Origin: Octopus sinensis
Taxonomy: Eukaryota
DNA length: 64,000 nucleotides
Assembly (NCBI RefSeq): GCF_006345805.1
Contig: NC_043002.1
Location: 83,886,001 to 83,950,000 of the forward strand
Reading direction: 5' to 3'
The notes under the pieces were generated by a model. That model ran no database searches. It saw only the letters and a list, made by a program, of their open reading frames with translations, and was not told the origin of the DNA. Of the stretch, positions 110 through 484 are shown in pieces; positions within the stretch are counted from its first letter, which is position 1, and each line of letters opens with the position of its first letter. The position numbers and the translations under genes are program-made.

Positions 110-484
110 CTTTTCCGTATCCAGTTGTTTGCCTTCGGGAGAAGCAGCAGAGTGATTTTTGTGCAAAAAGACACCTGTAGAATCAAAGGACAGAACGAAG
201 CAAAAATGTTCAAAGCCAGTAAAACGGTTTTGAGCAAACTGAGGGAAACTGTACGACAGAAGACTAGAAATGCAGCAGAGGGAACGTTCGAGACTGAACC
301 TTGGAATTTGTGGCGGATTATATTTGTATGTTGCTTAAAGCCGAATACTGATAGAAATAAATTGACTAGAAACCACATTTTGAGTACCTATTATTATTTT
401 ATTTTCCTGAATAAAGTCGAAACGATATACTTTCTAGTGGTGGGTAAGATTAGCTTTCTGAAAACGACCCCACCGAAAATATAA
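110..484 (+). CDS. Terminal coding exon of paralogue A of the secreted Cyt-like gene family (upstream exons lie before the window)
   Basis: Polypyrimidine tract + TTTTAG acceptor (AG 108-109). Phase-0 translation LFRIQLFAFGRSSRVIFVQKDTCRIKGQNEAKMFKASKTVLSKLRETVRQKTRNAAEGTFET is colinear with exon 5 of gene B (29450-29644). The ORF runs on to TAA 482-484, but the homologous end is near 300. Confidence 0.8.
   Translation, partial: LFRIQLFAFGRSSRVIFVQKDTCRIKGQNEAKMFKASKTVLSKLRETVRQKTRNAAEGTFETEPWNLWRIIFVCCLKPNTDRNKLTRNHILSTYYYFIFLNKVETIYFLVVGKISFLKTTPPKI

Follow-up and report, generated by a model that had tools for sequence, protein, structure and literature searches.

The open reading frame at positions 110-484 of the window (the whole stretch of 64,000 nucleotides of Octopus sinensis DNA that we analysed) is most probably the last exon of an inactivated, unannotated third copy in a head-to-tail gene cluster, and this copy is found in both O. 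sinensis and O. vulgaris. We put the probability of this reading at about 0.77. The exon belongs to a cluster member, called gene A below, that is missing from the annotation and lies between LOC115213512 and LOC115213384 (gene B). The evidence comes from the exon itself, from its alignment with intact relatives, and from the remains of gene A further upstream, which could be read in O. vulgaris.

The exon and its reading frame

The exon at 110-484 (+ strand) is confirmed as real, and it is placed where an earlier note on this DNA had put it. Direct reading of the sequence, together with DNA alignments, locates the 3' part of the final intron of gene A at 80-109 (+), with a polypyrimidine tract and an AG acceptor (108-109) in phase 0. 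The segment 92-132 is 83% identical to 29431-29472, which spans the same junction in gene B. From the acceptor onward the frame is open from 110 to 481, with the stop codon at 482-484 (124 codons), and its translation begins LFRIQLFAFGRSS (LFRIQLFA). In the six frames of the window, which has a GC content of 0.30-0.41 and plentiful microsatellites, LFRIQ occurs only once more, at 29450 on the same strand.

The homologous coding part of the terminal exon, as delimited by a last-exon profile of the family and by paralogue alignments, comprises 62 codons at 110-295 (+), which read LFRIQLFAFGRSS...GTFET without a stop or a frameshift. The rest of the frame, at 296-484 (+), aligns at the DNA level with the 3' UTR of the paralogues. 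This tail includes an AATAAA at 356-361 (+), aligned with the AATAAA region of gene B, and a second AATAAA at 410-415 (+), upstream of the stop at 482-484. The codon of gene A that aligns with the LOC115213512 stop is a sense codon; the frame therefore continues for another 62 codons, past both of these AATAAA signals. As judged from these alignments, coding homology is limited to the first 62 codons and the remaining frame is read-through. A protein containing the exon was not found among the 5.8 billion clusters searched, a collection that holds the two NCBI isoforms of gene B and in which a cluster look-up shows the O. vulgaris model of gene B. Likewise, neither the NCBI annotation of O. 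sinensis nor the annotation of O. vulgaris contains a protein with this exon.

Relationship to gene B and LOC115213512

Gene B is the intact downstream member of the cluster. Its five-exon model spans 13237-29644 (+), with exons at 13237-13288, 14375-14556, 20953-21147, 26331-26561 and 29450-29644 (stop included), all placed by exact peptide matches. Every intron is bounded by GT-AG and an AATAAA follows at 29690. The 284-residue product agrees at every position (100% identity, full length) with XP_029638191.1 ('uncharacterized protein LOC115213384 isoform X2'); its orthologue in O. bimaculoides is LOC106875292 (83% identity). In its isoform X1 (287 aa), gene B carries an additional VAS after the signal-like sequence, at a point where the O. 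bimaculoides protein has VAN, which points to an alternative donor located a few bases past that of exon 1, at about 13288-13300 of the window.

The last exon of gene B begins LFRIQIFATKTSS at 29450, and its first eight residues match those of the exon at 110 in seven positions. The phase-0 acceptor and the strand are also shared, which bears out the statement in the earlier note that the two exons have the same acceptor phase and a common LFRIQ(L/I)FA start. In tblastn searches within the window each exon retrieved the other (E = 2.8e-4 and 1.1e-4) with 28-31% identity and one indel; the description of the pair as colinear with a single indel and divergent after the first eight residues was thus accurate. 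When these eight residues were removed, the local score of 47 against gene B was equalled in one of 5000 shuffles, and with the gene B orthologue of O. bimaculoides as the partner the observed score was not equalled in any of 5000 shuffles. The family last-exon profile matched the exon end to end over residues 1-62 (E = 2.7e-16) with 52 bits, the lowest of the 70 last-exon scores, the other 69 sequences being those on which the profile was trained; gene B itself scores slightly higher, at 64 bits. The tblastn E-values, the shuffles and the profile match rule out chance similarity between the two exons. At the DNA level the alignment with gene B extends through the end of the intron and the coding part into the 3' UTR, including the AATAAA.

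When all family members were compared with the exon, the best match was LOC115213512 together with its O. vulgaris orthologue (50% identity over 62 residues), followed by a Sepia protein (44%), with gene B much lower in the list (31%). The alignment with the LOC115213512 protein stops exactly at the last residue of that protein, and the codon alignment with its exon 5 is gapless (64.5% DNA identity over 62 codons). By this comparison, the exon is related most closely to LOC115213512 rather than to gene B. Along the stretch RVIFVQKD, gene B departs further from the family consensus than gene A does, and the strong divergence between gene A and gene B would reflect an older split rather than fast change of gene A.

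LOC115213512 (XP_029638381.1 in O. sinensis, CAI9724080.1 in O. vulgaris, both named 'uncharacterized protein') resembles gene A in its strand, its chromosome and its phase-0 junction FFK/LFRIQLFA. Unlike gene A, it is intact and annotated, and its stop codon directly follows ...ETFES. It has the same five-exon structure as gene B, with an intron 1 of 16 kb; intron 2 in the paralogues is 4-6.4 kb long. Gene B shares with gene A the family, the strand and the junction, but is only 31% identical to the exon.

The window is identical to the corresponding part of chromosome record CM016864.1, its position 1 being 83,886,001 there. On CM016864.1 the three loci follow one another on one strand: LOC115213512 (83,805,156-83,829,680, 56 kb upstream of the window), the exon (about 83,886,110) and gene B (83,899,237-83,915,644). 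Because LOC115213512 lies on the same strand, with five exons and the same FFK/LFRIQ junction, the arrangement is a head-to-tail cluster with gene A as its third member, and the same-strand tandem order proposed in the earlier note is thereby upheld. That note had taken the exon for the edge of a gene cluster. The cluster stands, but the exon does not mark the border of a functioning paralogue; it is most probably the tail of an inactivated copy that lies between two annotated genes. Similarly, the distance of 13 kb given there is correct when counted to the start codon of gene B at 13237 (12.75 kb from 484), whereas the two exons compared are 29.3 kb apart.

Degeneration of gene A

The part of gene A upstream of the window was read from the O. 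vulgaris locus L006 (OX597819.1), which was reached via a fused gene model described below and extends 11,044 bp further upstream. The two species are identical over positions 1-600 of the window and 99.7% identical over 2.36 kb, and O. vulgaris has the same 124-codon frame with all 124 residues. Exon 4 of gene A lies at L006 8667-8888, 2.3 kb upstream of exon 5, with its AG and GT both intact. It aligns without gaps over 74 codons with exon 4 of LOC115213512 (55% identity, E = 5e-24) and contains an in-frame stop at codon 14, which is assumed to be present in O. sinensis as well.

A remnant of exon 3 was found 1.4 kb above exon 4 in O. vulgaris. Only its last ~15 codons can be recognised, together with the donor (tblastn E = 0.01, blastn E = 5e-4). 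The reading frame that leads to this donor is interrupted 32 codons upstream of it, whereas exon 3 of the paralogue has 70 codons. The whole-family profile did not detect exon 3 at about L006 7000-7300, even with stops masked as X; since this exon is poorly conserved across the family, the remnant was identified only through its tblastn and blastn matches to the nearest paralogue. Exons 1 and 2 were not found in the remaining 7.2 kb of L006 upstream of the remnant, either with the family profile or with the N-terminal halves of the paralogues. One candidate for exon 2, a blastn match between intron 2 of LOC115213512 and L006 87-141, was rejected as a copy of a common octopus interspersed repeat (cagtcattggactgcggc...). 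From the region examined to LOC115213512 there is a further ~39 kb in O. vulgaris or 46 kb in O. sinensis, which leaves room for exons 1 and 2.

Conserved positions have changed in both exons 4 and 5 of gene A. Six residues are near-invariant in the family, defined as the same residue in at least 90% of 70 members: W150, D158, R210, P212, G245 and P257. Gene A retains W150 and P212, and the other four are replaced, D158 and R210 in exon 4 as read in O. vulgaris and G245 and P257 in the exon of the window. In the family, position 245 is glycine in 96% of the members, and position 257 is proline in 93% and alanine in 4%. The earlier note had set its tandem paralogue against an orphan exon or pseudogene fragment without matching exons 1-4 upstream. 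With O. vulgaris as a proxy, it is the degenerate state that we observed, with a stop in exon 4, a decayed exon 3 and exons 1 and 2 not found in 11 kb, and the idea of a working paralogue is not supported.

Other features of the locus

The O. vulgaris gene model that covers this region, CAI9724077.1 (P0124, 406 aa; L006 10001-87942 on OX597819.1, corresponding to about -1044 to beyond 64000 of the window), looks like a mis-fusion. It is composed of a 17-nt first exon, exons 2-5 of gene B (exon 5 shortened) and exons of PDPR; it is named PDPR, yet it clusters with gene B at 90% identity. The next gene downstream of gene B encodes an FAD-dependent oxidoreductase, whose first exons lie at 42944-43564 and 59681-59899 (+) and which runs past the end of the window. 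The O. bimaculoides neighbour corresponding to this oxidoreductase locus has DAO, FAO_M, GCV_T and GCV_T_C domains, and the O. vulgaris name is pyruvate dehydrogenase phosphatase regulatory subunit.

A short interspersed repeat (...cagtcattggactgcggccatgctgg..., translated ...SFDCGHAG...) occurs on both strands and also in the introns of the paralogues, and was the source of the false lead to exon 2. Examples of its copies are found at 3890-4123, 4864-5241, 20200-20460, 48082-48404 and 53123-53541 of the window, at about 26460-26520 of locus L003 and at L006 87-141. By reading of their translations, the open frames at 46954-47424 (-), 39138-39679 (-), 10362-10640 (-) and 60697-61109 (+) resemble fragments of retrotransposon reverse transcriptase/endonuclease, e.g. 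...LLHGSETWAVTAEDLRRLERNEASMIRWMCNV....

Evolutionary history of gene A

Over 135 codons, gene A and LOC115213512 differ with pN = 0.24 and pS = 0.66, the latter near saturation, which gives a pN/pS of 0.37 (bootstrap 0.28-0.50). This value is below the level that we would expect under neutral drift since the duplication, and it suggests that gene A remained functional over a long period and was inactivated afterwards. The divergence between gene A and LOC115213512 (50% identity) is much greater than the divergence between species (83% for gene B); the duplication would therefore predate the split of the species, and O. bimaculoides would have lost the relic. In the latter species no trace of exons 3-5 was found in the 3.9 kb between the syntenic anchors (L006 3828-4279, 5155-5210 and then from 14782 onward), nor a copy of the exon in the 10 kb upstream of the gene B orthologue.

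A plausible order of events is that the gene B lineage branched off first and that a later tandem duplication gave rise to gene A and LOC115213512. Purifying selection would then have acted on gene A over a large part of its existence, until its function was lost. Its decay would comprise the in-frame stop in exon 4, the erosion of exon 3, the loss of the terminal stop and the replacement of four of the six near-invariant residues. Gene A would now yield no functional protein, and O. bimaculoides appears to have lost the exons altogether.

Alternative explanations for the exon

The inactivated copy was weighed against three other readings. That only the 3' part (exons 3-5) was ever duplicated, leaving an orphan fragment that never was a complete gene, is unlikely, although it would account for the failure to find exons 1 and 2 within 7.2 kb above the exon 3 remnant, a distance that exceeds the 4-6.4 kb of intron 2 in the paralogues. 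The 16-kb intron 1 of LOC115213512 and the further 39-46 kb upstream beyond the region examined weigh against this argument. A fragment of this kind would also sit poorly with the retention of both splice sites of exon 4 and of the acceptor of exon 5, and with the pN/pS of 0.37 (0.28-0.50) over 135 codons, lower than the presumed neutral value. The same ratio, being below 1, is in turn compatible with an intact gene A that is strongly divergent and has merely escaped annotation, its last exon working with a new C-terminal extension of ~60 residues. The open frame of 124 codons, the intact acceptor and polypyrimidine tract and the full-length profile match agree with such a gene. So does the identity of 124 of 124 residues in O. 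vulgaris; the flanking non-coding DNA is, however, equally similar, and the identity is thus uninformative on constraint.

Against an intact gene stand the in-frame stop in exon 4 and the decayed exon 3 of O. vulgaris, the two AATAAA signals that precede the new stop and the four replaced near-invariant residues, together with the absence of an annotated protein with the exon in O. sinensis and O. vulgaris and of the exon itself in O. bimaculoides; we consider it improbable that gene A still works in this form. We give least credence, and very little, to the exon serving a neighbouring gene, either as an alternative 3' exon or within a non-coding or read-through transcript. The 17-nt first coding exon of CAI9724077.1, at L006 10001, lies between exons 4 and 5 of gene A and is spliced into gene B, which hints at transcription through the region. 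This model, however, skips the exon and fuses gene B to PDPR, and hence looks like an annotation artefact, and the exon occurs in no protein. The reading of the exon as the tail of a once complete, now inactivated copy is the one that we retain.

A protein family with a patchy distribution

A profile search of 1.84 billion representative sequences retrieved 102 relatives at E <= 1e-3, mostly of 240-310 residues, and all named members of the family are 'uncharacterized' or 'hypothetical'. A third homologue search, with the 70-sequence alignment, returned five proteins and added nothing. Searches of Pfam gave nothing relevant for the exon peptides, and none of 70 family members matched a common Pfam family, even at E <= 10. 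In the literature, we found nothing relevant on these LOC names or on volvatoxin- or Cyt-like proteins in octopus, cephalopods or chloroviruses.

O. sinensis has at least four intact family loci. LOC115213512 and LOC115212730 share a chromosome with gene B, and LOC115210937 lies on a different one. Further cephalopod members come from O. vulgaris, O. bimaculoides, Argonauta hians and Acanthosepion (Sepia) pharaonis. A second O. bimaculoides locus, LOC106883830 (L004, CM046606.1 25,800,622-25,832,385), is on the same chromosome as the gene B orthologue, 23 Mb away. The LOC number of LOC106883829 is adjacent and its chromosome record the same, which suggests that the two genes form a second tandem pair; at a distance of 23 Mb, they were excluded from the gene B cluster.

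Outside animals, members were found in the fungi Trametes, Agrocybe, Schizopora and Ceratocystis, in the fern Ceratopteris, in a brown alga, in Chromulina and Acetabularia, and in a chlorovirus. The family is thus spread patchily over cephalopods, basidiomycete and ascomycete fungi, Ceratopteris (with several loci), algae and chloroviruses (P0015, P0016, P0020, P0043, P0084, P0018, P0040), and horizontal transfer is a possible cause of this pattern. The fungal, fern and algal 'hypothetical proteins' and the 275R protein of chlorovirus ATCV NE-JV-2 (AGE56576.1) belong to the same family by sequence profile, and the chlorovirus BFVD models M1I283 and M1HBT0 by fold (TM 0.71 and 0.59 to the gene B model described below). 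By reading of their sequences, the cephalopod members have hydrophobic, signal-like N-termini, whereas several fungal and algal members start without one. Extra domains occur in some members, such as the LDL-receptor class A repeats that form a fusion with one metagenomic member.

Predicted fold of the intact members

An AlphaFold2 model of gene B built from the 70-sequence alignment reached a pLDDT of 86 and a pTM of 0.84; an earlier model from three sequences was unusable (pLDDT 43). Helices are interspersed among the six strands of the predicted structure, the end of which is formed by three long strands (198-210, 219-231 and 243-257) and a C-terminal helix. In this model, exon 5 encodes the last two long strands and the C-terminal helix and, by homology, the exon at 110-295 would encode the same elements.

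A Foldseek search of the PDB with the gene B model returned Cyt1Aa, Cyt2Ba, CytB, Evf, volvatoxin A2 or Dickeya CytC as each of the top 13 matches, with E-values from 1.4e-4 to 8e-3, probabilities of 0.77-1.0 and 210-295 aligned columns; the next matches had probabilities of at most 0.15. The TM-scores of these Cyt-type matches are just 0.22-0.34, with an rmsd above 10 Å. None of the 70 family members matched the Pfam model of Cyt toxins and volvatoxin, even at E <= 10, the scanned set being one that we take to include PF01338 (Bac_thur_toxin), the Cyt model. A sequence profile search of the PDB gave only spurious matches, to a designed repeat protein and to ribosomal L4.

The Cyt fold is a single alpha/beta domain in which a six-stranded antiparallel sheet lies between two helical layers, and volvatoxin A2 has this fold at less than 17% identity (PMC4179158). 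Credible matches to the gene B structure were limited to the Cyt delta-endotoxins of Bacillus thuringiensis (Cyt1Aa, Cyt2Ba and CytB), volvatoxin A2, Erwinia Evf and Dickeya CytC. The predicted gene B structure likewise contains six strands with helices between them. The octopus proteins differ from the Cyt-type proteins in their length (~285 residues, as compared with 188-267 in the matched chains) and in their signal-like N-termini. The proteins of the intact cluster members, of ~285 residues, have a predicted alpha/beta-sandwich fold, which may resemble that of the Cyt/volvatoxin pore-forming toxins. The earlier note had guessed at a toxin or immune effector family from the tandem duplication and strong divergence. 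The guess gains some backing from these structural matches; against it stand the low TM-scores and the lack of a sequence link to Pfam or the PDB. We infer that the intact members belong to the Cyt/volvatoxin type of membrane-active protein and are secreted.

Implications

As a tentative and rather less probable extension of our reading, gene B and LOC115213512 could represent an undescribed branch of Cyt/volvatoxin pore-formers that is scattered over cephalopods, fungi, a fern, brown, green and golden algae and chloroviruses. In cephalopods, this branch would have gained signal peptides and formed tandem clusters with gene birth and death, of which the exon would be a turnover fossil.

Taken by itself, the exon is an ordinary result, an unannotated pseudogene from a tandem duplication, and is useful for annotation. 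The relic is kept in O. sinensis and O. vulgaris and gone in O. bimaculoides, so the cluster gains and loses copies. If the fold assignment holds, cephalopods would carry a secreted family of predicted Cyt-like proteins, and a tandem expansion with birth and death would, if true, fit secreted venom components or immune effectors. The wider value lies in the family itself, which has no Pfam model and a patchy spread that includes giant viruses, and for which a confident structural model finds its matches among the Cyt-type cytolysins.
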